From positions 1-64,000 of the forward strand of contig NZ_JMCB01000024.1 in NCBI RefSeq assembly GCF_000737315.1: a stretch of DNA of 64,000 nucleotides. The letters are read 5' to 3'. Shown here one piece after another: positions 12,913 through 51,977 of the stretch. The notes beneath the pieces were generated by a model. The model was given only the letters and a program-made list of their open reading frames with translations. It did no database searches and was not told the DNA's origin. The stretch's first letter is position 1. Every line of letters begins with the position of its first letter. The position numbers and the translations under genes were made by a program. The DNA comes from Hyalangium minutum. GTDB taxonomy: Bacteria > Myxococcota > Myxococcia > Myxococcales > Myxococcaceae.

Positions 12913-12915
12913 GCG

Positions 12916-16314: not shown

Positions 16315-17798
16315 TCACGCTCCGCCTGCGCACCACGTGCCTCGTCCTGCTGCTGGGCACCGCCTGCTCCTCCACGCCGCAGCCGCGCCCGACGCCGGCT
16401 GCTGATGCCCCGGCCCCGGCCAGCACCTCCGCAGCCAGCACCTCCGCCGCGGCCACTCCCGCCTCGGAGACGGCCTCGGCCTCCCAGACGCCGGAGTCCG
16501 GTGGCGCGCAGGTGGTGAAGACCGTGCCGGCGCCTCCGGCCACGCCCTCGGTGGAGCCCTCCGCGCCTCCGCCTCGCCCCGTCACCCGCGAGGGCACGGA
16601 CTTCGAGCGCGCGGTGGAGAGTGCCCGGAAGGGTGAGCTGGAGATCGCCGCCCGGAGCCTCGAAGCGCTGCTGTCGAGCAACCCCAAGCTGGACTACGCC
16701 TGGACGAACCTCGGCGTCATCCGCGAGCGCCAGGGCCAGGTGGACGAGGCCGAGAAGGCCTACCGCAAGGCCCTGCAGCTCAAGCCGGATCAAGAGACCG
16801 CCTGGGACTTCCTCGTCCGCCTTTACTGCCGCACGAACCGCGCCACCCGCATCGAGGCCGAGCTGCGCCAGAAGCTGGAGTCCTCTCCGGACGCCGTGGG
16901 CATGCGCACCGCGCTCGCCTACGCCCTGCTGCAGCAGAAGAAGCTGGAGAGCGCCGCCAACGAGGCCAAGCGCGCCCTCAAGGTCGATGAGCGCTATGTG
17001 AAGGCCATGCAGGTGCTCGCGCAGGTCTACTACCGCGAGAAGAAGTTCGAGCTGTCCCGCTACGTGCTGGAGAACGCCCGCGCCATTGATGGACAGGATG
17101 CGGCCACCCACAACGCGCTCGGGCTGGTGCAGCTGACGCTCAAGTCTCGCATCCAGGCGCTGGAGAGCTTCCGGAAGGCCGCCGAGCTCCGCCCCGACTT
17201 CGCCGAGGCCCGCAACAACTACGGCGCCATGCTCAACGAGTCCCAGGACTACCCGGCCGCCGTGACGGAGCTGGAAGCCGCCGTGAAGGCCGCGCCGGAC
17301 TTCGCCTCGGCCCGCCTCAACCTGGGCAACGCCTACCGAGGGCTCGGGGACTTCGCCCGCGCCAAGGCCGAGTACGACCGGGTGCTGCAGCTCCAGCCCT
17401 CTCTGGTGGATCCGTACTTCAACCTCGCCATCCTCTACCTGGACATCGAGCCCCAGGGCGTGGACACGATCGAGCGCTACAAGACGGCCATCGCCCACTT
17501 CGAGAAGTTCAAGGGCCAGGGCGGCAAGGACGACCGCATCGAGCAGTACCTCAAGGATGCCCAGAAGGGCATCGAGAAGGAGGAGCGGCGCCGCGAGCGC
17601 GAGAAGCGCGACCAGCTCCGCAAGGCCCAGAAGGCCGAGGAAGACGCCAAGAAGCAGGCAGAGGAGAACGCCCAGAAGCAGGCAGAGGCCCAGAAAGCCG
17701 CTGCCGCCGCTCAGCCGCCCACACCTGCGCCTACTCCCGCAGCCCCCCCTGCCACACCCGCCCCCACCTCGGGTAAGCTGTCCACCGACGACAAGTAG
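16311..17798 (+). CDS. TPR lipoprotein, GltE/AglT-like paralog
   Basis: Lipobox LGTAC; TPRs AWTNLGVI, ARNNYGAM, ARLNLGNAY; C-terminal charged coiled coil; GTGA overlap with the upstream gene. Confidence 0.8.
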   Translation: MITLRLRTTCLVLLLGTACSSTPQPRPTPAADAPAPASTSAASTSAAATPASETASASQTPESGGAQVVKTVPAPPATPSVEPSAPPPRPVTREGTDFERAVESARKGELEIAARSLEALLSSNPKLDYAWTNLGVIRERQGQVDEAEKAYRKALQLKPDQETAWDFLVRLYCRTNRATRIEAELRQKLESSPDAVGMRTALAYALLQQKKLESAANEAKRALKVDERYVKAMQVLAQVYYREKKFELSRYVLENARAIDGQDAATHNALGLVQLTLKSRIQALESFRKAAELRPDFAEARNNYGAMLNESQDYPAAVTELEAAVKAAPDFASARLNLGNAYRGLGDFARAKAEYDRVLQLQPSLVDPYFNLAILYLDIEPQGVDTIERYKTAIAHFEKFKGQGGKDDRIEQYLKDAQKGIEKEERRREREKRDQLRKAQKAEEDAKKQAEENAQKQAEAQKAAAAAQPPTPAPTPAAPPATPAPTSGKLSTDDK

Positions 17799-29330: not shown

Positions 29331-29403
29331 TCCCCGATAGCTCAGCCGGTAGAGCGGGTGACTGTTAATCACTAGGTCCGTGGTTCGAGTCCACGTCGGG
29401 GAG
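29331..29403 (+). tRNA. tRNA-Asn (GTT); CCA not encoded
   Basis: Cloverleaf: acceptor TCCCCGA/TCGGGGA, D-arm GCTC/GAGC, anticodon arm GGTGA-CTGTTAA-TCACT, T-arm CGTGG-TTCGAGT-CCACG. Confidence 0.97.
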
Positions 29404-29412
29404 CAGACAATG

Positions 29413-29449
29413 AAGGGCCCCGGACGAAAGTCCGGGGCCCTTTTCTTTT
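29413..29449 (+). terminator. Intrinsic terminator after tRNA-Asn
   Basis: AAGGGCCCCGGAC-GAAA-GTCCGGGGCCCTT perfect stem followed by TTCTTTT. Confidence 0.9.
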
Positions 29450-29542
29450 GCGCAGGCTGGCCATCCCAGCGTCTCCCTCGCCAATGCCCTAGGATTGAGC
29501 CCTGGTGGCACTGAGCAGTCCGTGCACTCCCAAGGGGGGCGA

Positions 29543-30631
29543 GTGAGCAAGGTCTACATCAACGGTCGCTCTGTCATCCACAAGGGGGATGGCCAGATCA
29601 ACACGAGCTCGGTGCCGGACGTGTGCAAGACGCCCTCCCCGGGCGGTCCTGTACCCATTCCCTATGTGAACGTGGCGAAGGACGCGGACCTCTCCCAAGG
29701 AAGCCAGTCCGTATCCATCGAGGGACACGCGGTGGCCCTCCAAGGCTCCAGCCTGAGTACCAGCAGCGGCGACGAGCCAGGAACCGCTGGCGGCGGCCTT
29801 ATCTCCTCGAAAACAAAGGGGAAGATGACCTGGGGTAGTTCCAGCATCGACGTGAAGATCGAGGGCAAGGGGGCCATTCGCTTCTTGGACGTCACTCAGC
29901 ACAACGGCAACACCTTCAATACTACATTCATACAACAGGGGGGAACAGGGTTCGCCTATGGCGACGACCCCATCGACGCCGAATCTTCCGATTGCCCCAA
30001 GTGCAACAAGAACAAGGCCCTGCACGCCATTCTCGAAACCCTGGAGAGTGAATCCCTGACACGAGTATTGGCAGGTCAGATCGATCTGGTCCGGCTCAAG
30101 AAGAGCCACCTTCAGACGCTTCGAGGCAAAGGCAAGAGCAAGAGAGGCTATATGATCGGCATTCTCCTCTGCAAATGCCGCAAGTTCGTCTATGCCGCAA
30201 TGTCTGGGGAGGAGACCCTTCCTGGCTTCGAAGAGGCCGTCAAGCAACTTGAGACAACAGACCCTCTGAAGCGGGAGTGGGTTGTGTGTGGGCGGGTAGA
30301 TTTCACCCAGATGCACAACAGTGAAGGACTCATCCCTGACAGTGAGAGCTTCTTCAACACATTGGCTGTACCTCCGCAAGGCAACATCCCAGGAGTTTGT
30401 GCTGCACCGAAACTCCTCCAGACAGCCCAGCAGAGCAAGCACCGCCCTGCTCACATGACCGAAGTCTATTACAGTCCTGGAATCGCAAAAACTGTCGAGG
30501 TGACCTTCTTCCGGGACGGGAAACCAGTCACTGAGAATTTCGGCCATGGGGCTACGACCCCATCATGCTCCACGTGCCAGCTTCACGTCACCCCTATGCT
30601 CTGTGGGAACAACGAGGCTGTGTGCAGTTGA
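29543..30631 (+). CDS. PAAR-like (DUF4150) protein with C-terminal Cys-rich toxin domain (putative T6SS effector)
   Basis: GTG start after AAGGGGGG; DUF4150 motifs SVPDVCKTPSPGGPVPIPYVN, SSGDEPGTAGGG.IS, V.IEGK...RFLD...HN; C-terminus with CxC, CAAPKLL and PSCSTC; visibly more AT-rich codons than flanks. Confidence 0.88.
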   Translation: MSKVYINGRSVIHKGDGQINTSSVPDVCKTPSPGGPVPIPYVNVAKDADLSQGSQSVSIEGHAVALQGSSLSTSSGDEPGTAGGGLISSKTKGKMTWGSSSIDVKIEGKGAIRFLDVTQHNGNTFNTTFIQQGGTGFAYGDDPIDAESSDCPKCNKNKALHAILETLESESLTRVLAGQIDLVRLKKSHLQTLRGKGKSKRGYMIGILLCKCRKFVYAAMSGEETLPGFEEAVKQLETTDPLKREWVVCGRVDFTQMHNSEGLIPDSESFFNTLAVPPQGNIPGVCAAPKLLQTAQQSKHRPAHMTEVYYSPGIAKTVEVTFFRDGKPVTENFGHGATTPSCSTCQLHVTPMLCGNNEAVCS

Positions 30632-30644
30632 CAAGAGAGTTGCT

Positions 30645-31376
30645 GTGACCCAAGCCACCATTGACTTCCTGCGCAAGTACGACCCTGACTACCCACGCAA
30701 GGTACATGGTGCGAGTCGCCATGACATCGAGCGAGTCAAGTCCCTGAGCGGTCAATCACTACCAGCCGCCTACGAGGACTTCCTCAGCACGATGGGGAGA
30801 AGCATGGGGGATCTCAAGGTTCCCCAAACCAATTTCAGCATCGACAGGGTCATTGAGTTCTATAGCCAAGGGGCTCAACTACCTCCTCCACACTACCTCT
30901 TCATTGCCGCGCATGAGCAGGATCCTTATATCGACTACTACCTCGACTTGCGCACCTCCAATGGCTCGGACAGCGAGGTAGTCCGCATCACCAGCGAGGT
31001 GGAGGAATTCAAGAGCCAGTATGTCCATCCCCTCTTTCTGTCCTTTCAGGATTTGATATTTACATTTGCCTTCACGCTCAAGCGAATGTCTTATCTAGCA
31101 CATCGGACACAGCTTATCCCGTCACCGCCCAAAGCGCAGAAACAGGGGCTTGAGCTTGCTGATACCTTGAGCACTCTGGAGGCGCTGGCACTTCGGATGG
31201 GCTTCCAGAAACTACTCCTCACGAGTTCACGTTGCTTAATGCTTGAGCGGCAGGATGCTGCACTTTACGGGCGAGCGACTCCTCAAGGCGGCGTCCACGC
31301 CGAACTCGCCGCGAGTACGGAGAGTGAGAAAAACCGGCTCCGTGAGATCATCTGCGATCACACAGCGCTCGTGTGA
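30645..31376 (+). CDS. SMI1/KNR4 (SUKH) family immunity protein
   Basis: GAS..DIERV....G..LPAAYEDFL.TMG signature; starts 13 bp after the toxin stop; similar low-GC codon usage. Confidence 0.78.
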   Translation: MTQATIDFLRKYDPDYPRKVHGASRHDIERVKSLSGQSLPAAYEDFLSTMGRSMGDLKVPQTNFSIDRVIEFYSQGAQLPPPHYLFIAAHEQDPYIDYYLDLRTSNGSDSEVVRITSEVEEFKSQYVHPLFLSFQDLIFTFAFTLKRMSYLAHRTQLIPSPPKAQKQGLELADTLSTLEALALRMGFQKLLLTSSRCLMLERQDAALYGRATPQGGVHAELAASTESEKNRLREIICDHTALV

Positions 31377-31590
31377 CCTTGCATCACCTGCTTACTTTTG
31401 CCGGTTTGACCGGCGCACCGATGGGGCACGGCAAACATCTGGCCAAGGAACCGCTGCCGGAGTTGGCGGAGTCTGCCCCCTGCCCTCACCGGAAACAGTT
31501 CGCCCGGTGCCACGCCTGCGCCGAAACGCTGTCCCGCAGCGCGAAAACGTCCATGCTGTGCCCAGACCACCCCTTGAGAGATAGAGGAGG

Positions 31591-33018: not shown

Positions 33019-34707
33019 TCAGCCTGGTGAGCGCAGCGCGGCCAGCGCCTTCAGACCGGCCTCTGTGTAGACCTTCCGCCAGCGGCGCAGCTCCGACAGG
33101 GGAACCCCCATCCGCGAGGCAATGGCCTTCTCGCTTTCTTCACCGCTGAGCATGCCGAGCACGGCCTCGGCCATGGCCTCGGTGGGTGGCAGCGCCCCCG
33201 CGCTGGAGGCCAGGTGCTGCGCCAGAGAGACCTCCGGCGCCACGGAGAGGCTCGGGCGGACCTGCAACGCCAAGGAAGCGGAGGCCTCGGCCTGGGTGAG
33301 CGGCAGGCGCGCCGCCGGATCCCCCAGGAGGAGGTAGCCGGAGAGATCCTGCCGTAGCATCCACAGATGGGCGCGCTCGGCGGAGTCCACGGGGTTGTCG
33401 CGCCCGGCCAGGCGCGCCGACTCCTCGTAGTCATAGAGGGTGGTGAGCTCCGTGTTGGCCTCGTTGAAGAACCGCATGAGCGCACTCAGGCCCGCGCCCG
33501 CGCGGCGGCCTTCCACCAGGGTGCGCAGCAGGCCCAGAAAGCGCGAGGGCCGGTTGCGCGCCGCGCGGCCCAAGTCCTGGAAGGAGTAAGTCCACGCCAA
33601 GTCCACGTGGCCCACCACCGCCAGCGGCCCCTGAGGGTTGGCGAGCACCGCTTGAGGCAAGGCCGCGACGAAGGGACGCTCGCCTTCGCGAGGGAGCGCG
33701 GCCAGCAGCCGCTCCAGCCGGCCGGGGTACTGGCCCACCTCGCGCAGCCGCGACAGCCACGGGTAGTAGGCGCTGCGAGCGGGAGTGCCTGCCCCGAAGC
33801 ACGCGAGGAAGAACCAGATTCCCCCCGGCAGAAACGGAGTTGAAGCCAAGGTCGAGGCGTCCAGCGCCCCTTCCACGCCCAGGCTCATGGCGCCCTGGCG
33901 CGCGCGCTGCTCGTCCACCGAGCGCCAACCACTGCGCGGGGCGCCCAACCCGTGGCTCATGGTGAAGAGCACGGAGGGCTGAGGCGAGGCCACCTCCGCG
34001 AGGAGCTTCTGCGCGGACCAGTCCGCAGGCTCGCCCAGCTCGGAGAGAGACGCCGCGGAGAGGCTGCCCAGCTCCTGCAGCTTGCGCAGGCTCTCGAGGC
34101 TGGGAGCCATCAGCGCCCGGTAGCCCACGGTGGTGGCGGCGGTCCCATCGTGCGCGGTGAAGAGCATCGCGCGGCCCTGCTGCGTGGGCGAGGGCGAGCG
34201 GCTCCAGCGCAGCACCTTGTCCACATAGGCCTCGTAGCCCGCCTCCGAGGGGAAGACGAGCCGGCCCGCGAAGCCGTCACTGCCGAGCACCTGCTGCAGC
34301 TCGACCGACACCTGATCGAAATCGCCCAGCAGCAGCAAGTAGGCAGGCTGCTCCGTCTCGAACTCCGCCTCGTTGCGCAGCACGGTGTCCTTCCACCGGA
34401 CGGCCTGCATCCCATCCATGCCGGGCTTGACCCGGTAGATGCGCGCTGGGGCGCCCTGCTCCTCTTCGCGCAGCCGGCGCAGCGGCTCGATGAGGGCAAG
34501 CAGCCTGTCCCCCAAGGGGCCTTCCGGGGCAATCACCCCCCAGCGCTGATCCGGCAGGGAGTTGGGATCCACCCCCGCATCGATCAGATCCTTGCCCGAG
34601 GCGCGCTCCTCGGGCCGGGGCAGATGGGCCGCCGCATCCAAGGGCAGCGCATCTTCCAGCACGGGCCGCCGGTCATCGGCATGGGTCAGCAGCAGCTCGA
34701 AGTCCAT
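33019..34707 (-). CDS. Putative clan-CD (C25/gingipain-like) cysteine protease with C-terminal HTH
   Basis: YLLLLGD, then FTMSHGLG (His-Gly) and FFLACFGAG (Cys) as a dyad, and LLGDPA near the domain end; C-terminal IASRMGVPLSELRRWRKVY helix-turn-helix. Start set at ATG 34707. Confidence 0.62.
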   Translation of the reverse strand: MDFELLLTHADDRRPVLEDALPLDAAAHLPRPEERASGKDLIDAGVDPNSLPDQRWGVIAPEGPLGDRLLALIEPLRRLREEEQGAPARIYRVKPGMDGMQAVRWKDTVLRNEAEFETEQPAYLLLLGDFDQVSVELQQVLGSDGFAGRLVFPSEAGYEAYVDKVLRWSRSPSPTQQGRAMLFTAHDGTAATTVGYRALMAPSLESLRKLQELGSLSAASLSELGEPADWSAQKLLAEVASPQPSVLFTMSHGLGAPRSGWRSVDEQRARQGAMSLGVEGALDASTLASTPFLPGGIWFFLACFGAGTPARSAYYPWLSRLREVGQYPGRLERLLAALPREGERPFVAALPQAVLANPQGPLAVVGHVDLAWTYSFQDLGRAARNRPSRFLGLLRTLVEGRRAGAGLSALMRFFNEANTELTTLYDYEESARLAGRDNPVDSAERAHLWMLRQDLSGYLLLGDPAARLPLTQAEASASLALQVRPSLSVAPEVSLAQHLASSAGALPPTEAMAEAVLGMLSGEESEKAIASRMGVPLSELRRWRKVYTEAGLKALAALRSPG

Positions 34708-34720
34708 GCCAGACGGCCGT

Positions 34721-34736
34721 TGCCATTTCCTTGCCA
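34721..34736 (-). promoter_or_regulatory. Possible sigma54 promoter for the protease-phosphoesterase operon
   Basis: Minus strand TGGCAAGGAAATGGCA fits GG-N10-GC, but -12 is TGGCA and the predicted leader is only a few nt. Confidence 0.35.
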
Positions 34737-34775
34737 ACCCCTTTGTAGACGCACACTTGCGCGGACGAGCGCCCG

Positions 34776-34809
34776 TTGACGCGTCAGCTGACGCCCATTG
34801 ACGCGCAAA
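34776..34809. promoter_or_regulatory. Tandem palindromic enhancer boxes (putative sigma54-activator UAS)
   Basis: TTGACGCGTCAG (34776) and TTGACGCGCAAA (34798), starts 22 bp apart; the same boxes recur at 42038-42070. Confidence 0.7.
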
Positions 34810-34857
34810 TGGCCGCCAGATCCCTCCAGCAGTCACGCCCTTCCCCCGAACCTCTCT

Positions 34858-34873
34858 TGGTTCAGGGCTTGCA
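34858..34873 (+). promoter_or_regulatory. Sigma54 (-24/-12) promoter of the Kelch gene
   Basis: TGGTTCAGGGCTTGCA fits GG-N10-GC with TTGCA; 50 bp from the proximal UAS box; RBS GAGGAG and ATG 34918 downstream. Confidence 0.68.
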
Positions 34874-34917
34874 ACCTTGTGTGCGGAATCCCACTCGCAC
34901 CACGAGGAGATTCGACC

Positions 34918-37872
34918 ATGACGAAGCGGCTCGAGAGGAGCGCCCCCGCCCTGCCTCAAGGGGCGACCTGCCTGCTGCTGGGGTGCCTGGCGCTGGGCTG
35001 TGGCCCCTCGTCGAGCTCGGAGCTCCCATGGATGAAAGAGCTGCTTCAAGGAGAGTCCTCCACCGTGGAGACCTCCGGCTGGCGCGACATCGCGGCGATG
35101 GACTCCATCCGGACGAGCCACACCGCCACGCTGCTGCCCAACGGCAAGGTGTTGATCTTGGGCGGGAGCAATGCCACCGCCAAGGCTCTCGTCAGCGCGG
35201 AGTTCTATGACTTGAGTACCGGCGAGTGGGAGAAGGCAGGCACACTGGAAACCCCCCGCGCTGGACACACCGCCACGCTGCTACTCAACGGCAAGGTGCT
35301 GGTGGCGGGAGGAAGGAACGACAACGACCAGGCCCTCGACACCTTCGAGGTGTACGACCCAGCGACGAAGATCTCAACCCAGCCGACCCTTCTCATGGAC
35401 TCCGCCCGCTATGATCACACGGCGACGCTGTTGGCCTCGGGCAAGGTCCTGGTCACCGGAGGGCTTTCAGACTCCACAGGACGGTCCTCCCTCGACACGG
35501 CGGAGGTCTACGATCCGGATCAGGGCTCCTGGCAAGCAGCAGACACCATGAGCCATGCCCGCTCGCGACACACCGCCACGCGCTTGCCCTCCGACCGCGT
35601 CCTGATCGCTGGGGGAACAGACTCTGAGCTCACCAGCGACGCCGAGGAGTACGCCCCGGATGGCAGCGCGGCGATTCCCGTCGGCAAGCTGATCCAAAAT
35701 CGCTCGGAGCACACGGCCACGCTGCTGCCCTCGGGAAAGGTTCTGATCGCCGGCGGCAAGGACTTGAACGGACGCAGCATCGGCACCGCCGAGTTGTACG
35801 ATCCCAATCTGCGACAGTGGCGTCCCTGCAAGGAAATGATGCAGCAGGCCCGCATCGGCCATACGGCGGTGCTGTTGTTCACAGGCAAGGTGCTGGTCGC
35901 GGGAGGCTACGTCAGCCCCACATCGCCCACCGGTATTCCCAACACGGAGGAGTACGACCCAGACGAGGAAACCTGGAGCGACAGCGGCACCTCTCTGGGC
36001 ACCGGTCGTCTCAAGCACACGGCCACGCTGCTACCTGACGGCAGGGTGCTGGTCACGGGCGGGTTCGGAACCAGCGCCGTCCAGAGCGCGGAGGTATACG
36101 GCTCGGGGATGGGCAACTGGCGTGACGGGGAGGCCCTGCTCCAGGAGCGCTCCGGTCACACGGTGACGCAGCTTCCCGGTGGCAAGCTGCTGATCGTCGG
36201 CGGCACGTCGAACGGAACTACCGCCCTGAAAAGCGCAGAGCTCTATGACCCAGCCAGCGGCAAATGGAGCCCCACTGCCAAGCCTTTGGGGACCGCCCGC
36301 TTCCACCATACGGCCACGCTGCTTCCCAACGGCAAGGTGCTCGTCACCGGGGGCACGTCGAGCGGGACCAGCGCCCTGAAAAGCGCCGAGCTTTATGACC
36401 CGGCGACCGGCAACTGGAGCCCCACTGCCAAACTTTTGGAGACCGCCCGCTTCCACCATACGGCCACGCTGCTGCCCACGGGACAGGTGCTCGTCGCCGG
36501 AGGCACCTCAGGTCAGGACACAGCGCTGAAGGACGCAGAGCTGTACGACCCGGCAAGCAATACGTGGATCCCTGCCGAGAACCTGAGTTCCCCCAGGTTC
36601 CTCCACACGGCCACACCGCTTCCCTCGGGCGAGGTTCTGCTCATCGGAGGCACCCAGGGCCTTAACTCGCCCGTGGACAGCGACGAGCTGTATGACCCGA
36701 AGACCGGGACCTGGAGCAGCATCCCCTCATCGCGGGCCTCCCGCTTCGAGCACACCGCGACGCTGCTGCCCTCCGGACTGGTCATGGTCGCCGGAGGACG
36801 AAGTGGGGCCCACGCAGTCTCCTCCGTGGAGTTCTATGATCCGAAGGAAAGCGCGTGGGTGGAGACCGCCTCCGTCACGCTCAACACGGGCCGCTACGGC
36901 CATACGGCAACGTTGTTGCTTTCCGGCCTCGTGCTGATTGCAGGGGGGACGAATGGACTCACGGTCTTCGCCAGCTCGGAAGTGTACGACCCCGCCCTGG
37001 GGGTCTGGAGCCCTCTCACCCCGTCGCAGCTCACCGCCCGCCATCACTCGACCGCCACGCTTCTGCCCTCGGGCAAGGTGCTGGTCGCCGGAGGCGTGAA
37101 CGACAGCGGCCGCCTGAAAAGCTTCCAGATCTACGAAGGCCCCGTGGCTGCCAAGAGCGAGACGTCTCGTCCCTCGCTCCATTCCATTCCTCCCAAGCAG
37201 CCGGGAAGCACACTGGAGCTCCAAGGGACGCATCTGATCAATCACTCCGAGACCAGCGGAGGCAATGCCCGCAGCTCCTCCTCCGCCCTCCCCCTCGTCA
37301 GCTTGGTGGCCGTGGACGGAGGAGCGCTGACCCGCGTCACCCAGTGGGCCACATTCTCGGACAGCTTGCTCACCTTCACCTTGCCGAAGCTGCAAACGGG
37401 CCACTACATCCTCTCCGTCACCGCCCAGGGCGCTTCCGGAGGGCGGGTTCTCCTCGTGGACGGAACACCCCCGGCCGCGCCGCAGGTCGCTCGGCCCCTC
37501 CAGGACCAAGCCATCCACACCACGAGCCCCCCAGACATGACCGGCGCCGCCGAGCCGGGCAGCACGGTGGCACTGACTCTGGATGGAGTTAAGGCTGGGT
37601 CGATGGACATCGATGCCAAGGGGAATTGGAGCTACACTCCTCCGGCCCCCTTGGGGCTTGGAGCCCACACCCTCTCAGTCACCGCGACGGACCCGGCCGG
37701 AAATTCCAGTGAGGCCTCTTCCGTCACCTTCCACATCGAACGCCCCGTGAGCCACTATGGATGGGGTTGTGCCAGTACTCCGGGGCTTTCCCTCAGCGGG
37801 CTCTGGCTGGGGGTGACCTTATGGCTCAGGCAGAGGAGCAAGCGCCAGTCCGCCTTCCCTCTTGGCCACTGA
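34918..37872 (+). CDS. Kelch-repeat surface lipoprotein with Ig-like domain and MYXO-CTERM-like tail
   Basis: Lipobox LALGC; 14 HTATLL.xGKVL..GG Kelch repeats; Big-type domain (G.AEPGSTV.L.LDG...G.W.Y......G.HTL.VTATD.AGN); tail YGWGC, hydrophobic stretch, RQRSKR. Confidence 0.88.
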   Translation: MTKRLERSAPALPQGATCLLLGCLALGCGPSSSSELPWMKELLQGESSTVETSGWRDIAAMDSIRTSHTATLLPNGKVLILGGSNATAKALVSAEFYDLSTGEWEKAGTLETPRAGHTATLLLNGKVLVAGGRNDNDQALDTFEVYDPATKISTQPTLLMDSARYDHTATLLASGKVLVTGGLSDSTGRSSLDTAEVYDPDQGSWQAADTMSHARSRHTATRLPSDRVLIAGGTDSELTSDAEEYAPDGSAAIPVGKLIQNRSEHTATLLPSGKVLIAGGKDLNGRSIGTAELYDPNLRQWRPCKEMMQQARIGHTAVLLFTGKVLVAGGYVSPTSPTGIPNTEEYDPDEETWSDSGTSLGTGRLKHTATLLPDGRVLVTGGFGTSAVQSAEVYGSGMGNWRDGEALLQERSGHTVTQLPGGKLLIVGGTSNGTTALKSAELYDPASGKWSPTAKPLGTARFHHTATLLPNGKVLVTGGTSSGTSALKSAELYDPATGNWSPTAKLLETARFHHTATLLPTGQVLVAGGTSGQDTALKDAELYDPASNTWIPAENLSSPRFLHTATPLPSGEVLLIGGTQGLNSPVDSDELYDPKTGTWSSIPSSRASRFEHTATLLPSGLVMVAGGRSGAHAVSSVEFYDPKESAWVETASVTLNTGRYGHTATLLLSGLVLIAGGTNGLTVFASSEVYDPALGVWSPLTPSQLTARHHSTATLLPSGKVLVAGGVNDSGRLKSFQIYEGPVAAKSETSRPSLHSIPPKQPGSTLELQGTHLINHSETSGGNARSSSSALPLVSLVAVDGGALTRVTQWATFSDSLLTFTLPKLQTGHYILSVTAQGASGGRVLLVDGTPPAAPQVARPLQDQAIHTTSPPDMTGAAEPGSTVALTLDGVKAGSMDIDAKGNWSYTPPAPLGLGAHTLSVTATDPAGNSSEASSVTFHIERPVSHYGWGCASTPGLSLSGLWLGVTLWLRQRSKRQSAFPLGH
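36224..36523 (+). repeat. Recent 150-bp tandem duplication of a Kelch blade
   Basis: CCCTGAAAAGCGC at 36224 and 36374; long identical tracts such as TGGAGCCCCACTGCCAA and GACCGCCCGCTTCCACCATACGGCCACGCTGCT. Confidence 0.85.
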
Positions 37873-37950: not shown

Positions 37951-40900
37951 ATGCCGATGCGTGAGAAGTATGAGCAAGAATTGCGCGTAGCGCAGATGCG
38001 GGGTGTGCTCTCCCAAGAGGAAGCCGAGGCCCTCATCACCGAGGGCCTCCTCCAGGGCTGCCACCCCCTGGAGCTGCTCGTGGCCCGGGGCATCCTCTCC
38101 GAGGAGACCCTGGACGAGATTCGAGCCGCGGCCTACGGCACCGGAGCGCCCCTCCACGCGGGCTTGAAGCAGGGAGAGACGCTCTCCTTTCGTCGTCCCC
38201 CGGCAGAGCCCCCGGCGCGCGTGGAGGAGCCTCTCACCCCGGGCTCTCCGACTCGCACCATTCAGCCCGGGACCCCACCGGCGGTCCCACCCGCGAAGCC
38301 CCCAGTTCCCGCGGACGCGCCCGTGACCCCTGGGTCTCCCACCCTCACGGTCCACCCCACTCCCAGCCAGACGACCCCCTATCCCCAGGAGCCGGCCTTC
38401 CCCGTACCGGGCTGGGAGCGCTACCAGCCGGTGCGCTTCCTGGGGCAAGGCGGCATGGGCCGCGTCTACCTCGCGTATGACCCGGTGCTGCGCCGCAACG
38501 TGGCCCTGAAGTTCGTGCGCGGGGACGACCCCGAGCTCCAGCACCGCTTCATCTCCGAGGCGCAGGCCCAGGCCCGCGTGGAGCACGAGCGCGTGTGCAA
38601 GGTGTACGAGGTCGGCGAGGTGCAGGGCCAGCCCTTCATCGCCATGCAGTACGTGGAGGGCTGCTCGCTGCTGGATCTGATCCGGGAGCTGTCCCTGGAG
38701 CAGAAGGTGATGGTGATGCAGCAAGTGACGGAGGGCGTGCACGCCGCCCACCGCGCCGGCCTCATCCACCGGGACATCAAGCCGACCAACATCCTGGTGG
38801 AGCGTGGGGAGGACGGGCGGTGGAAGCCCTACGTCATGGACTTCGGCCTGGCGCGCGACTGGCAGCGCGAGGCCACCGTCACCGGCACGGTGCTGGGCAC
38901 CCCGCACTACATGGCGCCCGAGCAGGCCCGGGGCGAAGTGAGCCAGTTGGACCGGCGCGCGGATGTCTACAGCCTGGGCGCCACGCTGTACGTGATGCTC
39001 ACGGGCAAGACGCCCATCCCCGGCACCAACGCCTTGGAAGTGCTCACCAACCTGGCCACCCAGGAGGCGCGCCCACTGCGCGAGCACAACAAGAACGTAC
39101 CGGTGGACCTGGAGGCGATTGTCCTCAAGTGCCTGGAGCGGGAGCCGTCAGCCCGGTACGACTCAGCGCGGGCGCTGGCCGAGGACCTGGGGCGCTTCCT
39201 CAACGGCGAGCCGGTGCAGGCGCGCGCCGTGGGCACCTGGTACCGGCTGCGCAAGAAGGCGCGCAAACACTGGGCCCTGGTCTCCGTGGCCTCCGTGGCG
39301 CTGGTGCTGGTGCTCCTGGCGCTGGGAAAGGCGGAGCTCACCCGTCGTGACTCAGCTGAACGTGAGCGTCTGTCAAGCCACTTCACCAAGGTGGCGGGAG
39401 ACGTGGAAGCACGCGCCCGCTTCATCGCGCTCAGCCGCCTGCACGACACCCGCGCCGAGCGCCAGGAGCTGCGCACCCGGCTGGGAGAGATCGAGCGAGC
39501 GATGGGCGAGAGCGGCGAAGTGGCTCAAGGGCCCGGGCACTATGCGCTTGGACAGGGATGGCTGGACCTGGGGGATCCCGCCAAGGCCCGCGAGCATCTG
39601 GAGGCAGCCAAGGCGGCGGGCTATGAGGATCCGCAGGCCAACGTGGCCTTGGCCCTGGCGATGAGCCAGCTCTACAACGAGCAACTGCTGTCCCTGGGAC
39701 AGCTCGCTTCCGAGCTACGTAAAGCGCGCCGCGAAGAGCTGGCTGTCCAGTACCGGGAACCCGCGCTCAACTTGTTGCGCGAGAGCAAGAACGCCCAGGT
39801 GAACTCCAGCGAGTATATGAAAGCGCTCCTGGCCTTCTACGAGGAGCACTATGACGAGGCGCTCGGCCAGCTGAACTCGCTCGGAGAACGGATGCCCTGG
39901 TTCTACGAGGCCCCCAAGCTCCGGGGCGACATCCTCCACGTGCGCGCTCTGATGCGCTGGAGCGATGGACAGCAGACGGAGAAAGAAAAAGAACAGGTCC
40001 AAGCGGACCTCGAAGAGGCCCGCCGGTCTTACCTCCGGGCGGCGGACACCGCCCAGAGCGCACCGGAGGTGCACTGCGGGTTGGCCCGGGTCGAATGGGC
40101 GGCGGTCTCCATGGCCCTCTACAGCAACGGGGAGGTGGCGCCCCATATCGAGCGCGCGCTCCAGCACCTCTCCCGAGCCCTCCAGGCGGCGCCAGACCAC
40201 GCTGCGTCCTGGGTCCTGCAGGCCACGCTCTATCGTAACCTCGCCCAGTCCAGCCACTTGCAGGGACAAGCCGCTGAGAAGCCACTGCGCCAGGCGATCG
40301 ACTCTGCCCAGAAGGCCTTGGACCTCAACCCGTCAAACATGGAGGCGCGCAAGGAGCTGGGCATGGACTGGCTGGAGCTGGCCACGCTCCATCAAAAGAT
40401 CAACCAGGACCCTCGCGAGCCGCTCCAGCACGCTCTCAAGGTCTTCAAGGAGTTCGAGACCACCCAGAGCGACTATTACGTCTACCATGGACTGGGCCTC
40501 ATCTTCACAAAGCAGGCCGACTATGCGGAGAGTCTTGGAGCAGACTCGCTGCTCCATCGCAACGAGGCCATCAAAGCCTTCCAGAAATCGGTCGAGCTCA
40601 AAGACAACTATGAAGCGGGCTGGGTCAACCTCGCGACTCAGTATTACAAGCGAGCCACCCTCCCCAAAGCTCCCTCCCCCAAAGAAGACCTCGAGCAGGC
40701 CTGGCAGGCGCTGCAGAAGAGCCGAGAGCTGGATCGTCAGAACTTCTTGGTCCGCTTCCAAGCGGGCAGGGTCCAGTTGGCCCAGGCGCAGCGCCTGCGT
40801 GACTCAGGCGAGGATGAGCGCCCAGCCTTGACCGCGGCCCTCGACGCCTGCCGCGAGGGGCTGGCAATCAACCCTCGCATGGTGGAGTTGCACAACCTGA

Positions 40901-41643
40901 AGGGCCTGGCGCACAAGGAGCAAGCTCGGGCCGCATGGGAGCGCGGCGAGGACCCGCTGCCACTGATGGATCAGGCACAACAGGCCTTTGACCAGGCACG
41001 GACCCTCGCCCCTCAGCGGAACTGGGCCTACAACAACCTGGCGGACCTGTCCGCCACCCGGGCCATGTATCTGAGTTCCCGAGGCCAGGATGCCCGGCCC
41101 AGTGCCCGCGCAGCGCTGCAGCTCGCACGCGAGGCCCAGCAGCGCGCGCCCACGCACTACGCGCCGCTGATCGACATGGGGCATGCCTCCCAGCTGCTGG
41201 CAGCCTTCGCCTTGGAGGACGGCGCGGATCCGCGCCCGTATCTCATTGACGCCCTGGAGACCCTCCAACAGGCGCTTGAGCGCTCCCCTGACAATACGGA
41301 GACGTGGCTCTATCTGGCGGAAGCCCGAGCGGTGCAGGCGCAATGGAGCGCACGGCAAGGGCGAGGGGCTGACAAGGATTTCGAGAAGGCCCACAAGGCC
41401 TATCAGCAAGCCATCCTCTCGACGGAACGGCCCCTGGACTACCGCCTGGCCTTTGGCCGCTTCTGCCACACGTGGGCCACCTGGAGAAAACAAGCCGGGC
41501 TTGATGCCTCGGTTCCCCTCGAGCAGGGGCTGTCGCTGGTGAGCGAGGTGTTGAAGGCTCGGCCCGATTGGGCCGAGGCGCTCGCGCTGCGCGCCAGCCT
41601 CGAGGGGCTGCGTCCCCAGTCACAACCGGACGCAGCACCCTAG
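37951..41643 (+). CDS. Membrane Ser/Thr protein kinase with C-terminal TPR region
   Basis: LGQGGMGRVY, VALKF, HRDIKPTN, DFGLAR, GTPHYMAPEQ; TM WALVSVASVALVLVLLALG; long TPR-like helical C-terminus. Start may be 37957. Confidence 0.93.
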   Translation: MPMREKYEQELRVAQMRGVLSQEEAEALITEGLLQGCHPLELLVARGILSEETLDEIRAAAYGTGAPLHAGLKQGETLSFRRPPAEPPARVEEPLTPGSPTRTIQPGTPPAVPPAKPPVPADAPVTPGSPTLTVHPTPSQTTPYPQEPAFPVPGWERYQPVRFLGQGGMGRVYLAYDPVLRRNVALKFVRGDDPELQHRFISEAQAQARVEHERVCKVYEVGEVQGQPFIAMQYVEGCSLLDLIRELSLEQKVMVMQQVTEGVHAAHRAGLIHRDIKPTNILVERGEDGRWKPYVMDFGLARDWQREATVTGTVLGTPHYMAPEQARGEVSQLDRRADVYSLGATLYVMLTGKTPIPGTNALEVLTNLATQEARPLREHNKNVPVDLEAIVLKCLEREPSARYDSARALAEDLGRFLNGEPVQARAVGTWYRLRKKARKHWALVSVASVALVLVLLALGKAELTRRDSAERERLSSHFTKVAGDVEARARFIALSRLHDTRAERQELRTRLGEIERAMGESGEVAQGPGHYALGQGWLDLGDPAKAREHLEAAKAAGYEDPQANVALALAMSQLYNEQLLSLGQLASELRKARREELAVQYREPALNLLRESKNAQVNSSEYMKALLAFYEEHYDEALGQLNSLGERMPWFYEAPKLRGDILHVRALMRWSDGQQTEKEKEQVQADLEEARRSYLRAADTAQSAPEVHCGLARVEWAAVSMALYSNGEVAPHIERALQHLSRALQAAPDHAASWVLQATLYRNLAQSSHLQGQAAEKPLRQAIDSAQKALDLNPSNMEARKELGMDWLELATLHQKINQDPREPLQHALKVFKEFETTQSDYYVYHGLGLIFTKQADYAESLGADSLLHRNEAIKAFQKSVELKDNYEAGWVNLATQYYKRATLPKAPSPKEDLEQAWQALQKSRELDRQNFLVRFQAGRVQLAQAQRLRDSGEDERPALTAALDACREGLAINPRMVELHNLKGLAHKEQARAAWERGEDPLPLMDQAQQAFDQARTLAPQRNWAYNNLADLSATRAMYLSSRGQDARPSARAALQLAREAQQRAPTHYAPLIDMGHASQLLAAFALEDGADPRPYLIDALETLQQALERSPDNTETWLYLAEARAVQAQWSARQGRGADKDFEKAHKAYQQAILSTERPLDYRLAFGRFCHTWATWRKQAGLDASVPLEQGLSLVSEVLKARPDWAEALALRASLEGLRPQSQPDAAP

Positions 41644-42086: not shown

Positions 42087-43664
42087 TCAATTCGAGACCA
42101 GCCCCAGTTCCCGCACACGGCGCTGGAGCGCTCGCAAGGAGACCTCGAGCCGCTGCGACATGAGCTCCAGGTCGCCGTTGCACTCACTGTAGCTCTGACG
42201 AATCTGCTCGACGCTCAGGTCCTTGGCGGTGCGCACCCGGGAGCTCTTCTTCATCAAGTTGTAGAGCGAGGCGCGGGTGATGCCGAGCTGGTTCGAGGCA
42301 GCCGCCAGGTCATAACCGTGCGCACGCAGTGCCCCCATCATCTCCTCCTCGGAGACCTCGGAGGGCTTGCGGCGCGTCTCGGGCAGTGCTTTCGAAGAGG
42401 AAGGCGACGGAGGCGTGGGGGACACCGCAGCCAAGGAAGACAGCTCCTCCTCCAGCCGAGGATCCACATGCAAGCTCGGCAGGCCGCGGCTGCCGATGAC
42501 GAGCTGACGCGTCACGTTGCGCAGCTGGCGGACATTGCCAGGCCACGGGTAGCGCACCAGCCGCGAGGCCAGCGCCGCTGGCAGCCATGGCTCGGCCGAG
42601 GGCTCCGAGGACTCCAGCCGCCAGACCTCTCCGAGGCTCTCCAACTCCTGGCGAGCAAAGTGCAAGAGCAGCAGGCCCAAGTCCTCACGGCGCTCGCGCA
42701 GAGGAGGAACCCGGATCTCGAACCCCGCCAGCCGATGAAGAAGCGGAGCCTTGAACTGCCCCTGCTGGATCTGCTCCTCCAGGTGAGCGTCTGTCGCGGC
42801 CACCAGACGCACCTGCGTCTTCACGGGCGTGCGGGCCCCCACGGGAAACATCTCCCCAGTCTCCAGCACGCGCAGGAGCAGGGCCTGCACCTCCGGAGAG
42901 GCCTCGGCCACCTCGTCCAGAAAGAGGGTGCCGCCCTGGGCCGCGCGGAAGAAGCCCTCGCGGGAGTGCGTGGCGCCCGTGTAGGCCCCACGCTCGGCGC
43001 CAAAGAGCTCGGAGGCGGCCAGCTCCTTGGGCAGGGCTCCCAGGTTCACGCTGATGAAGGGCCCCTTGTGCCGCAGGCCGTGCTGATGAAGCGCCCGGGC
43101 CACCAGCTCCTTGCCGGTGCCTGTCTCGCCCCGGATGAGCACAGGCACGTCCAGGTCCGCCACTTGCATCACCTGCCGGCGAACCCGCCTCACCGCCGCG
43201 CTCTGGCCCACCATGCCCAACTCCTCCCCCCCCTCCTTCTCCGCAGGCTCTACCCAGTGCAGCAGCAGCACCACGCGTTCGGCCAGCTCCAGCGTGACGC
43301 CAGTGACCAGCGCCTGGGTCTCCAGCTCACGCTCTCCCGTGAGCGGCTCACCCTCCACGATGACCTGGGGACTGCTTCCCGCGACGATGCGCACGCCCCC
43401 TTGCTCTCTCGGAAGGAGGCGCAGCGGCTTGCGGCTCAGGAAGGGGTCGGCCAGCGGCAGGCCGACAACGGAGCCCGGGCGCGCGAAGAGAGGCTCCGTG
43501 CGCGAGATGGCGGCCTCCCGGCCCGCCTCGAGCTCGCGCAGCAGCACCCGCTCACCGATGCGCTGGATCTTCGGGTGGGAGATGAGGGTCAACGCTGGAA
43601 CCAGTCCCGGCGCCCCGGGGCCACTGCGGCGCGGGTTCCGGGTGAGCGTGGAGATGTCTTCCAC
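42087..43664 (-). CDS. Sigma54-dependent enhancer-binding protein with FHA-like N-terminus and HTH
   Basis: GETGTGKELVA, SELFG..RGAYTGA, GGTLFLDEV, RLVAATD, WPGNVRQL; tandem C-terminal HTH-like segments; N-terminal ISR...LSR resembles a degenerate FHA; no receiver Asp pocket seen. Start set at GTG 43664 (RBS AAGGGGAGG). Confidence 0.92.
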   Translation of the reverse strand: MEDISTLTRNPRRSGPGAPGLVPALTLISHPKIQRIGERVLLRELEAGREAAISRTEPLFARPGSVVGLPLADPFLSRKPLRLLPREQGGVRIVAGSSPQVIVEGEPLTGERELETQALVTGVTLELAERVVLLLHWVEPAEKEGGEELGMVGQSAAVRRVRRQVMQVADLDVPVLIRGETGTGKELVARALHQHGLRHKGPFISVNLGALPKELAASELFGAERGAYTGATHSREGFFRAAQGGTLFLDEVAEASPEVQALLLRVLETGEMFPVGARTPVKTQVRLVAATDAHLEEQIQQGQFKAPLLHRLAGFEIRVPPLRERREDLGLLLLHFARQELESLGEVWRLESSEPSAEPWLPAALASRLVRYPWPGNVRQLRNVTRQLVIGSRGLPSLHVDPRLEEELSSLAAVSPTPPSPSSSKALPETRRKPSEVSEEEMMGALRAHGYDLAAASNQLGITRASLYNLMKKSSRVRTAKDLSVEQIRQSYSECNGDLELMSQRLEVSLRALQRRVRELGLVSN

Positions 43665-43812
43665 CAAGTGCCCTCCCCTTCGCATGCCTCCGTCGTCCGA
43701 GGCTCCTGCCCAGTACTTCAAGGGACTGAACCCTTCAAGCCCTTGCCGCTCCCCATCCTGGAACCACCTCGAGGACGTGCGCCGCTGGCGCACACGCGTC
43801 AGCGCCGTGTTC

Positions 43813-44715
43813 ATGCTGGCCTGGGCGTTGGCGTGCCTGATGGCGGGACCTGCTTGGGCGGAGGAGGCCACGAACATCGACGTGCCGGAGACGGAAAACC
43901 CATACATCCAGGCGGTAGCCACGCTCTACGGACAGTCCAAGTATGAGGAGGCGTTCTCCAAGCTGGAGAAGGCGCAGGACTGGAAGTCCAACGGGCCGCA
44001 GGAGCAACTGTGGCTCAAGCTGATGCAGGGCGTGCTGCAGGTGGAGCTCGCCCCGGAGGCGGCGCTGCAGACATTCAAGGAAGCGCTGGCGATGGATGAG
44101 CAGGCGCAGCTGCCGGTGAAGAAGGGCTCGCGGCGCTTGCGCAAGCTCTTCGAGCAGGCGCGCAACACGGCGGGGCTCCCGGCGGACCTGGCGCTGGAGG
44201 AGGAACCGGACGAGGCCGACGCGCCCGTGGTGACGGGCCCGCCCGAGCGGCGAATGGGCCTGAGCCTGAGCGTGCGCGGAGAGGTGGATGTGCCAGGACT
44301 GGGCGTCACCCGCTCTATCTCTTCCGTGGTGGGGCTTGGGTACACGAAGGAGCGGATGGGAGGATTGGTGGGAGTCCTGGTGCAGCCCACGCCAGGGCTT
44401 CGGGCCGAGTGGCAGTACCACCCCATCAACCTCGGCTGGGTGCGGCCCTATGCGGGGGTGGGGGCTACGGCGTTCTTCCTGGAGGAGAATGCGGAGGGAA
44501 CAAACACCGTCTTCGGTGGAGTCAGCGGTCGCGGGGTTCTCGGGGTGGATGTCCAGTGGAACTCTCGCATGTTTGTCTTTGCCGACGTGGCGTATGAGCG
44601 CTTCTTTACCGGGGGCGAGCGGTACCGCTCGGAGGCAGTGCTGTTCTCGATAGGCGTGGGCCTGTTCCCCCAGCATCCCAATCCGGTGGGGGCCGGGACG
44701 AACCTCCCCCGCTGA
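43813..44715 (+). CDS. Exported protein: TPR-like N-domain plus small C-terminal beta-barrel (paralog 1)
   Basis: Signal ending AWA-EE; NPYIQAVATLY...YEEA..KLEKA; C-terminal amphipathic strands (VRPYAGVG, GRGVLGVDVQW, VFADVAYE). The start may be slightly upstream. Confidence 0.72.
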   Translation: MLAWALACLMAGPAWAEEATNIDVPETENPYIQAVATLYGQSKYEEAFSKLEKAQDWKSNGPQEQLWLKLMQGVLQVELAPEAALQTFKEALAMDEQAQLPVKKGSRRLRKLFEQARNTAGLPADLALEEEPDEADAPVVTGPPERRMGLSLSVRGEVDVPGLGVTRSISSVVGLGYTKERMGGLVGVLVQPTPGLRAEWQYHPINLGWVRPYAGVGATAFFLEENAEGTNTVFGGVSGRGVLGVDVQWNSRMFVFADVAYERFFTGGERYRSEAVLFSIGVGLFPQHPNPVGAGTNLPR

Positions 44716-44866: not shown

Positions 44867-45784
44867 ATGACCTCTGCCTTGAAAATCGCCCTTCTCTGCC
44901 TGACCGCCGTCACCGCGTCCGCCGAAGAGCCCTCGAAGCTCGAGCGGCCGTTCACGCCCAACCCCTACATCCCCGCAGTGGCCACGCTCTATGAGCAAGC
45001 CCGGTACGAGGAGGCCCTCGCCAAGGTGGAGAAGGCTGTGGGCTGGAGATCCAACGAAGTGCAGGAGCTGGTCTGGCTCAAGTTGATGCGGGGCGTGCTG
45101 CTGGCGGAGCAGTCCCCGGAAGCGGCGCTGCAGTCCTTCCGCGAGGCCCTGGCGATGGATGTCTCCGTGCAGCTCCCCGTGAAAGGCCCGAGGCGCTTGC
45201 GCAGGCTCTTCGCGCAGGCCCGCGGCACCCTCGCGCTACCGGACGGTTCGCGGGAGGACGAGGAGGAACTGGAACTGGAAACACCCGCGGTGGCTCGCGA
45301 AGAAGCGGCGGACGGCTCCCCGAGGCAGCTGGGATGGAGCATGAACATTCGTGGAGAGGTGGATGTGCTGGGGCTCGGCGTCACCACGACCGTCACCCCG
45401 GTCGTGAGCATTGGGTACACCCAGGAGCGCGTGGGCGGTCTGCTCGGAGTCGTGGTGCAGTCCTCTCCGGGGCTCAGGGCCGAGGCGCGATTCCATCTCT
45501 CTACCCAGGGCGGTCTGCGCCCCTATGCGGGGCTGGGCACCACGGCCTTCTTCCATGAACTGAACGCACAGAGGACGCCCACCTTCTTCGGCGGAGTCAG
45601 CGGGAGAGGAGTGCTCGGCGTGGAGGTGCAGTGGACCTCGCGTCTGTATGGCTTTGCCGACGTTGCCTACGAGCGCTTCCTGCGGCGCAAGGAGCTGTAC
45701 CGCTCCGACTCGGTGCTGTTCTCGATAGGAGTGGGGTTGCGAGCGTGGGCTTCCCGGGCCTCCTCGAGCGTCTCGCCCAGGTAG
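44867..45784 (+). CDS. Exported TPR-like plus beta-barrel protein (paralog 2), C-terminus altered by overlap
   Basis: Colinear with paralog 1 from NPYI to FSIGVGL; the last 15 codons lie antisense to the neighbouring WD40 gene. Confidence 0.72.
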   Translation: MTSALKIALLCLTAVTASAEEPSKLERPFTPNPYIPAVATLYEQARYEEALAKVEKAVGWRSNEVQELVWLKLMRGVLLAEQSPEAALQSFREALAMDVSVQLPVKGPRRLRRLFAQARGTLALPDGSREDEEELELETPAVAREEAADGSPRQLGWSMNIRGEVDVLGLGVTTTVTPVVSIGYTQERVGGLLGVVVQSSPGLRAEARFHLSTQGGLRPYAGLGTTAFFHELNAQRTPTFFGGVSGRGVLGVEVQWTSRLYGFADVAYERFLRRKELYRSDSVLFSIGVGLRAWASRASSSVSPR

Positions 45785-50379: not shown

Positions 50380-50397
50380 AGGGTGCGCGCTCCCGGC

Positions 50398-51951: not shown

Positions 51952-51977
51952 GGGTCTCTTTCCTGGCGTCCCGGAAC

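Follow-up and report, generated by a model that had tools for sequence, protein, structure and literature searches.

An uncatalogued toxin family, possibly a rewired deaminase-like zinc module, on a mobile PAAR-like effector cassette of Hyalangium minutum

Introduction

The interbacterial deaminase toxins DddA and SsdA have given rise to base-editing tools, and they showed that toxins can mutagenise the cells that survive them. In deaminases, the zinc ligands are located at the N-termini of two helices (PMC3239186). DUF4150, the delivery domain of the effector studied here, makes up the 'PAAR_E' class, and PAAR copy numbers are highest in Myxococcales (PMC8651086). Here, we describe a gene located at positions 29543-30631 (plus strand) of a 64,000-nucleotide stretch of the myxobacterium Hyalangium minutum (NCBI RefSeq assembly GCF_000737315.1, contig NZ_JMCB01000024.1, positions 1 to 64,000), hereafter called the window. 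The product of this gene joins a DUF4150 domain to a C-terminal domain that had been proposed, from the letters of the sequence, to be an unusual deaminase-like toxin (the original prediction).

The region 29530-31378 is a horizontally acquired cassette consisting of a PAAR-like effector gene and a SUKH immunity gene, and the C-terminal domain of the effector represents a real, uncatalogued toxin family. With a probability of about 0.5, we read the 362-residue effector and its SUKH partner as a cassette whose toxin domain would be a rewired zinc enzyme resembling cytidine deaminase (CDA) and blasticidin S deaminase (BSD), in which glutamate E307 would serve as a relocated general acid/base. 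Below, we present the evidence for this reading together with the observations that speak against it and the alternatives that could replace it.

Results

The effector and its toxin family

The features of the effector gene and of the gene that follows it are the following.

29543-30631, plus strand: toxin gene, 362 amino acids, GTG start, TGA stop, intact open reading frame
29606-29914, plus strand: Tox-PAAR-like/DUF4150 domain (PF13665, residues 22-124), a type VI secretion system (T6SS) spike-tip adaptor
29951-29971, plus strand: FAYGDDP, joining the delivery domain to the toxin domain and behaving as a recombination boundary in DNA comparison
29960-30628, plus strand: C-terminal toxin domain (residues 140-362, 223 amino acids), uncatalogued family, AlphaFold2 predicted local distance difference test (pLDDT) score of 93
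30645-31376, plus strand: immunity gene, 243 amino acids, GTG start 14 nucleotides past the toxin stop, SUKH superfamily, without signal peptide

The GTG start at 29543 is preceded by a Shine-Dalgarno-like run, AAGGGGGG, and is consistent with the database copy of the protein (P0001) and with the MSKVY or MGKVY starts of its relatives. No sigma-70-like promoter was detected upstream of the gene, which is uninformative for such organisms. All strings quoted in the original prediction, i.e. CPKC...H, GYMIGILLCKC, YAAMSG, GNIPGVCAAPKLLQTAQQSKHRPAHMTEVYYSP and HGATTPSCSTCQ, are present in the translation. Its proposal of a PAAR-like effector followed by an immunity gene was borne out: residues 22-124 match PF13665 with an E-value of 3.9e-32 and 111 bits, against a gathering cut-off of 31, and a SUKH-type gene is present at 30645-31376. 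The C-terminal domain is as unusual as had been claimed, since residues 140-362 match no catalogued family in Pfam or NCBIfam, and no PDB sequence (phmmer and hmmsearch).

DNA comparison of the window with other myxobacterial PAAR-like loci showed 70-81% blastn identity that ends at about 29969-29980 in four of the six matched loci; in one of the six it extends to 30179. Because the DNA similarity to most PAAR-like loci ends at the FAYGDD junction, the toxin domain appears to be an exchangeable module, and a YGDD or YADD motif recurs at the start of the toxin domains of the family. At the protein level, the toxin domain is 33-46% identical to those of related loci found in a genome scan, which was queried with a tight family alignment having a conserved block. 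The ten loci found in this way belong to Hyalangium, Corallococcus, Pyxidicoccus, Myxococcus, Archangium, two metagenome-assembled genomes (MAGs) of Rhodocyclaceae and one of Bryobacterales; the family spans Myxococcota, Betaproteobacteria and Acidobacteriota. When three close C-terminal domains were used as query, an exhaustive HMMER search returned 212 representative clusters (50% identity) at E<=1e-3, and 44 at E<=1e-10. A word-indexed protein search has poor recall for this family and found few relatives (3, 8 and 4 matches). The sole name given to a member by any source is 'DUF4150 domain-containing protein' [Hyalangium sp.].

The N-terminus is PAAR-like in 72 of 153 family proteins, contains eCIS_core/DUF4157 in four and CarboxypepD_reg repeats in two, and is unrecognised in others. 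An N-terminal DUF4157 combined with a C-terminal toxin is the published signature of toxins loaded into extracellular contractile injection systems (eCIS) (PMC8213781). The family has genetic properties of polymorphic toxins: the toxin domain is used with several delivery modules; the delivery N-terminus is conserved and the C-terminal toxin variable, with a sharp junction between them; and an immunity gene lies immediately downstream and is co-inherited with the toxin. Two observations on individual members should be mentioned. First, in the members from the Rhodocyclaceae MAGs (L008 4633-5850 and L009 492-1700) and from the Bryobacterales MAG (L010 5236-6204), the N-termini of about 200 residues have no Pfam match and may be unrecognised delivery domains; a SUKH-like gene still lies directly 3' of the toxin gene in L008 and L009. 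Second, the effector in an Archangium MAG (L007 5681-6747) is split between frames, with the PAAR-like portion at 5681-6109 and the toxin portion at 6106-6747; either the gene has been frameshifted and become a pseudogene, or the assembly is in error.

The product of the downstream gene at 30645-31376 matches PF09346 (SMI1_KNR4, SUKH-1) with 29.1 bits, against a cut-off of 25.4. Among 11 immunity homologues, eight match SUKH-1, five SUKH_5 and three SUKH_6. A homologue directly follows the toxin gene in loci L001-L009 and on the Logan contig L011 (22-69% identity). The downstream gene was compared in nine of the ten genome-scan loci and is homologous in these nine, with 33-39% identity in Myxococcota and 26% in Rhodocyclaceae. 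In nine of the 11 pairs the immunity protein is acidic (isoelectric point (pI) 4.9-6.3), the two Rhodocyclaceae homologues having a pI of 8.5-9.0, and no signal peptides are present. The toxin domains of the family are mostly basic (median pI 8.6). Immunity proteins that lack a signal peptide and are mostly acidic, together with mostly basic toxins, fit an intracellular target and neutralisation by binding.

In six myxobacterial loci, the immunity gene is followed by a gene of about 440 codons for a HEAT-repeat protein resembling TIGR02270 (E=2.5e-36 for the L001 copy, under the NCBIfam cut-off), which may act in the loading of DUF4150 effectors or as another accessory to them. The gene is missing from the window and, apparently, from L011. 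Its positions are as follows.

L001, 7607-8920: TIGR02270-like gene
L002, 7292-8761: TIGR02270-like gene
L004, 7285-8601: TIGR02270-like gene
L005, 7511-8824: TIGR02270-like gene
L006, 7426-8754: TIGR02270-like gene
L007, 7308-8513: TIGR02270-like gene

Conserved residues of the toxin domain

Conservation was computed on a domain alignment of 127 sequences and is given in full-protein numbering. The motifs concerned are located as follows.

29993-30025, plus strand: CPKCNKNKALH knuckle (C151, C154, H161), a putative structural metal site with C354 and possibly C361
30146-30211, plus strand: beta1-beta2 hairpin, GYMIGILLCKCRKFVYAAMSGE, with the near-invariant residues M204, G206, S221 and G222 (DSSP strands 64-71 and 76-81 of the domain)
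30398-30412, plus strand: CAAPK at the N-terminus of helix 2, with C286 as putative zinc ligand 1 and A288 at the position of the canonical catalytic Glu
30455-30463, plus strand: MTE in strand beta3, with E307 as candidate relocated general acid/base, aligning to beta3 of the Bacillus subtilis CDA (A74)
30494-30541, plus strand: beta-hairpin insert (residues 318-333), lineage-specific, between beta3 and the CxxC helix (DSSP strands 179-185 and 188-194)
30563-30577, plus strand: SCSTC at the N-terminus of helix 3, with C342 and C345 as putative zinc ligands 2 and 3
30602-30625, plus strand: C-terminal tail with C354 (95% conserved) and C361 (71%), end of the domain

Exactly four residues are invariant in all 127 sequences, namely C286, E307, C342 and C345. 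Five others (M204, G206, S221, A287 and C354) are at least 95% conserved, the residue preceding C342 is Ser in 82% and Pro in 16%, and K290 is Lys, Arg or Gln in 93%. Position 288, two residues past C286, is occupied by Ala in 86% of the sequences, by Gly in 13% and never by Glu; likewise, a motif census of the family never encountered C-x-E. The claim that Ala occupies the canonical Glu position while a Glu is present in the MTE strand therefore holds for the family as a whole, and an invariant Glu on this strand fits a relocated catalytic residue.

The CPKC...H segment was regarded in the original prediction as a linker. It is instead a conserved portion of the toxin domain, because the CxxC, the His and C354 occur together in 90 of the 96 sequences that cover the knuckle. 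Two eCIS-type members that lack both the CxxC and C354 retain the C286/E307/C342/C345 tetrad. This distribution suggests that the invariant core is separable from a second, structural site that is dispensable (C151, C154, H161, C354 and perhaps C361). Every member terminates 1-13 residues past C354. The spacing between the Glu and the CxxC ranges from 12 to 76 residues across the family, so that the beta-hairpin of residues 318-333, which is missing in compact members, would be an optional decoration.

The same residues allow for a different kind of enzyme. C286 might serve as a nucleophile together with E307 and K290 and, for instance, attack a pyrimidine or some other electrophile covalently, with the CxxC and the remaining cysteines having a purely structural or a redox role. 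The joint conservation of C286, E307 and K/R/Q290 is in line with such a thiol enzyme, pairs of Cys and Glu drive covalent pyrimidine chemistry in other enzyme classes, and the 95% conservation of C354 means that the CxxC is possibly part of a Cys4-type structural site. However, C286 lies at a helix N-terminus and faces a CxxC at the start of the next helix, which is the geometry of the deaminase zinc site with its three ligands; C354 co-varies with the N-terminal CxxC...H and not with the core tetrad; and the family shows no conserved His or oxyanion motif. We therefore consider a thiol enzyme very unlikely.

Predicted fold and its relation to deaminases

A model of the toxin domain of the window was built with AlphaFold2 on a 38-sequence alignment (pLDDT 93, predicted TM-score 0.91). 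From the N-terminus, it begins with a long helix and the beta1-beta2 hairpin, which are followed by an insert (two helices and a short strand), helix 2 starting from C286, strand beta3 with E307, the hairpin, and helix 3 starting from C342. C286 immediately precedes DSSP helix 148-158 of the domain, at the position of the first zinc ligand of deaminases, and is itself a putative ligand. C342-x-x-C345 is found at the start of helix 204-213, after strand 163-171, as is the PCxxC motif of deaminases. In the model, two consecutive helices, separated by a single strand, thus have C286 and C342/C345, respectively, at their N-termini, a predicted arrangement that is deaminase-like.

Two lines of evidence point to a specific group of deaminases. 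Firstly, an AlphaFold2 model (pLDDT 91.3) of a compact natural member (180 residues, without the hairpin) was compared with PDB using Foldseek, and about 38 of the top 50 matches were homotetrameric CDA or BSD structures, with probabilities up to 0.85, target-normalised TM-scores of 0.40-0.51 and E-values of 0.06-0.5. Secondly, hhalign placed G-x-C-A-A-P-K-L of the family profile over C53-A-E55-R-T-A-L of the B. subtilis CDA, the MTE strand over CDA beta3 (with E307 opposite A74), and S-C-x-x-C...L-C over P-C86-x-x-C89...L-C97. This in-register alignment was obtained with all three family alignments and for B. subtilis CDA and BSD separately (P-values of 0.008-0.026). The observed score of 21.1 compares with 11.9 +/- 2.5 for column-shuffled controls (z of about 3.7; 2 of 200 reach it), and a reversed control scored 10.4. 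For TadA, hhalign matched only a 12-residue stretch around the CxxC (P-value 0.34). The CDA, BSD, DddA and TadA sequences used were verified against PDB entries (6U08 in the case of DddA). These two lines, each weak but independent of the other, both point to the CDA/BSD clade, and the toxin domain is probably of deaminase-like origin.

We also considered a kinship with DddA/SCP1.201, suspected because of the Lys located two residues past the Glu position and the insert between beta2 and helix 2. This candidate was rejected: the hhalign probability was 0.2%, and a larger profile gave only an out-of-register match.

It could be argued that the likeness to deaminases is coincidental, and that the domain is a novel fold with a structural zinc cluster, toxic, if at all, by binding, or a pseudo-enzyme. 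The fold and profile matches are indeed weak (E-values of at least 0.06, hhalign probabilities of at most 5%), and the canonical catalytic residue is missing. Still, structure and sequence-profile methods independently lead to one and the same small clade; the motifs fall in register, and the shuffled controls are exceeded. Moreover, an invariant buried Glu and three invariant Cys residues, kept in 127 diverse sequences and in several delivery contexts, resemble an active site. In addition, polymorphic toxin cassettes with dedicated immunity genes are, to our knowledge, almost always enzymes or pore-formers. Taken together, this makes coincidence an improbable explanation.

Several observations weigh against an active, CDA/BSD-like zinc enzyme delivered by a T6SS. 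As to the fold, the model of the window domain gave no significant Foldseek match in PDB or BFVD (none at E<=1e-3); its top matches were S-adenosylmethionine synthetases (best E-value 0.015, TM-score 0.18), and mouse CDA appeared at rank 43 of the PDB matches with a probability of 0.23. The matches of the compact model did not reach E<=1e-3 either, and the hhalign probabilities against CDA and BSD are 1-5%. Neither of the two AlphaFold2 models contains beta4 or beta5 strands after helix 3, and hence neither has the five-stranded sheet of deaminases. As to the active site, the canonical [H/C]xE glutamate is absent from all 127 sequences, and in known deaminases such as Tad3 the loss of the catalytic Glu means inactivity (PMC3239186). 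If the highly conserved C354 were a fourth ligand in place of water, the zinc site would be only structural. No Pfam toxin or deaminase model matched any of 38 family members, even at E<=10. As to the context, no T6SS structural genes were found among the scanned large open reading frames of the window, a tblastn search with the gene of its relatives detected no TIGR02270-like accessory gene in the window, and the toxin domain of the window, with a pI of 7.15, is not basic.

The deaminase fold proposed in the original prediction is therefore only moderately supported. The matches of the compact relative to CDA and BSD and the register of the hhalign alignments support it, but the model of the window domain itself lacks a significant match and beta4/beta5 are missing. 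Since both beta4/beta5 and the canonical Glu at the +2 position are absent, the domain would be a derived deaminase-like module and not a canonical member of the superfamily.

These losses raise the question of whether the same scaffold and metal site might support another chemistry, i.e. that of a zinc hydrolase which is not a base deaminase, for example a JAB-like amidohydrolase or peptidase, or an enzyme whose substrate is a nucleotide cofactor or a precursor of the cell wall. The helix-2 Glu and beta4/beta5, which shape the substrate pocket of deaminases, are lost, no deaminase hidden Markov model matched, and the deaminase-like fold is known to host both JAB peptidases, which have a strand-borne Glu, and 5-aminoimidazole-4-carboxamide ribonucleotide (AICAR) transformylase (PMC3239186). 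On the other hand, the ligand set of one Cys and a CxxC is that of CDA and BSD, and not the HxH...D of JAB; CDA and BSD are also the nearest structural matches and the only proteins to align in register; and a cytoplasmic SUKH immunity protein combined with mostly basic toxins fits an intracellular nucleic-acid or nucleotide target. We thus regard another chemistry as unlikely. The toxin domain is best read as a truncated and rewired CDA/BSD-like module with a relocated Glu, constituting an undescribed family.

Mobility and genomic neighbourhood of the cassette

The cassette is located directly downstream of a tRNA gene.

29331-29404, plus strand: tRNA-Asn (GTT), identified by ARAGORN, with the low-GC cassette directly downstream
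29412-29443, plus strand: tRNA terminator, a strong hairpin (14-bp stem, 10 GC pairs) with a T-run, end of the native DNA
29530-31378, no strand assigned: mobile toxin-immunity cassette, two genes, 1.85 kb, low GC

The GC content of the cassette is 56.4%, versus 68.9% for the remainder of the window. The Logan contig L011 contains the same two genes with 75.6% nucleotide identity over exactly 29530-31378, while its flanks are unrelated to the window and no tRNA is present on it. Because both genes occur in unrelated flanks on this contig, the pair can be regarded as a mobile cassette. A search of the distal side of the cassette for direct, att-like repeats of the 3' end of the tRNA gene gave only chance-level matches of 11-14 nucleotides, no integrase was found nearby, and tblastn searches of plasmid and phage collections gave no match.

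The upstream neighbours are housekeeping genes, encoding RsmB, an LD-carboxypeptidase, a beta-lactamase-fold protein and the Mpl ligase, and the downstream neighbour encodes a metallophosphoesterase. At a greater distance, three adjacent large genes on the minus strand (45667-55736) resemble a conflict or defence cluster and encode an nSTAND1 NTPase with WD40 repeats (45667-50379), a TIR_2 and AAA_35 protein (50398-51951) and a WD40 protein of 1252 residues (51978-55736). A gene at 34798-37872 (plus strand) encodes a 1024-residue protein that has numerous Kelch repeats and, at its C-terminus, bacterial Ig-like domains; the start of this gene is overlapped by an open reading frame of 749 codons without Pfam match (33019-35268, minus strand). 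Furthermore, the window contains three successive large genes encoding TPR-repeat proteins of 787, 1132 and 495 residues (10549-17798, plus strand), Ser/Thr kinase genes at 1869-3677 and 37951-41643, a sigma-54 activator gene (42087-43922) and a GAF histidine kinase gene (56497-58716), all of which are typical of the gene content of myxobacteria.

Discussion

In the mechanism that we propose, we infer zinc binding, the role of E307, the substrate, toxicity and dependence on the T6SS. The PAAR-like domain points to T6SS delivery: through it, the 362-residue product would ride on the T6SS spike and bring the toxin domain into neighbouring cells. The producer would be shielded by the SUKH-family protein, presumably through binding and blocking of the toxin in the cytoplasm. 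Within the toxin domain, C286, C342 and C345 would hold a catalytic zinc with a bound water, and E307, which would reach up from beta3 beneath the gap left by the general acid/base of helix 2 (now Ala or Gly), would have taken over the shuttling of protons. A second, dispensable structural metal site (C151, C154, H161 and C354) might clamp the N- and C-termini together. The reaction would be the deamination, or another hydrolysis, of a base or nucleotide, and the most likely substrate is a base, nucleoside or nucleic acid in the cytoplasm of the target cell. A bolder form of this proposal, which we consider possible rather than probable, is that the domain is an active modifier of nucleic acids or nucleotides built on a minimal core of three strands and two helices, in which the Glu has moved from helix 2 to beta3 and the beta4-beta5 half, which usually selects the substrate, is gone, and which is deployed by both T6SS and eCIS.

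The family keeps the deaminase inventory of three Cys residues and one Glu in a rearranged and truncated scaffold, and its 212 clusters are sufficient for study. If active, it would show how far the catalytic centre of deaminases can be rewired, and it could provide a compact domain with a new specificity. If the Glu has indeed been relocated, this would be a new catalytic architecture in the deaminase-like fold, and the substrate or chemistry could differ from that of DddA, SsdA and APOBEC/TadA. If the chemistry is a different one, the repertoires of both T6SS and eCIS would be extended by a new kind of toxin activity. In addition, the cassette illustrates cleanly how a toxin gene and its immunity gene move together to a site next to a tRNA gene, which bears on kin discrimination.

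How does this locus compare with known systems? A resemblance of the CAAPK pattern to the N-terminal extension of long RluA pseudouridine synthases, put forward in the original prediction, is unsupported, albeit not strictly refuted. No pseudouridine-synthase domain was found with Pfam in the ten relatives scanned, which were taken from the best 150 and include eight of the nine whose toxin domain is followed by a long stretch, and no Pfam domain is recorded for four further proteins that were retrieved with an alignment of the core. The deaminase classification contains no RluA-linked clade (PMC3239186), and literature searches on CAAPK, or on RluA in combination with deaminases, gave nothing relevant.

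Effectors with a DUF4150/Tox-PAAR-like domain, such as those of the Tde2 type in Agrobacterium and the PAAR effectors with variable C-terminal domains in Myxococcus, share with the H. minutum effector the PF13665 domain, a C-terminal toxin and an adjacent immunity gene, but the C-terminal domain described here belongs to a different, uncatalogued family. Moreover, the cassette in the window is an orphan, with neither T6SS genes nor the TIGR02270-like gene found nearby.

The deaminase toxins of polymorphic systems (the DddA/SCP1.201, BURPS668_1122, SsdA, MafB19 and YwqJ clades) are likewise C-terminal modules on T6SS or other delivery domains, and SUKH-type immunity is common among them, as it is here. 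However, these clades retain the [H/C]xE motif and the C-terminal beta4-beta5 hairpin, both of which the present family lacks, and no sequence or profile similarity to them was found (with Pfam, and with hhalign for DddA). For a catalytic Glu that is located on a beta-strand and not on helix 2, the JAB/MPN metallopeptidases provide a precedent within the same fold (PMC3239186), although their ligands are HxH and Asp, the strand is a different one, and no similarity to the present family was detected.

The closest comparison is with the homotetrameric CDA and BSD enzymes, such as B. subtilis CDA (1JTK) and Aspergillus terreus BSD (1WN5). Shared with these are the all-Cys ligand pattern, with a Cys at the start of helix 2, [P/S]-C-x-x-C at the start of helix 3 and one strand between them, and the beta1-beta2 hairpin with a conserved Gly in beta1. 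On the other hand, where CDA and BSD have C-A-E, the family has C-A-A or C-A-G together with an invariant Glu on beta3. The family further differs in having an insert of 36-259 residues between beta2 and helix 2, an additional N-terminal CxxC...H knuckle and a long helix, and in being without beta4/beta5 and the C-terminal helix. Finally, the context of the family described here is that of a toxin and not of nucleoside salvage.

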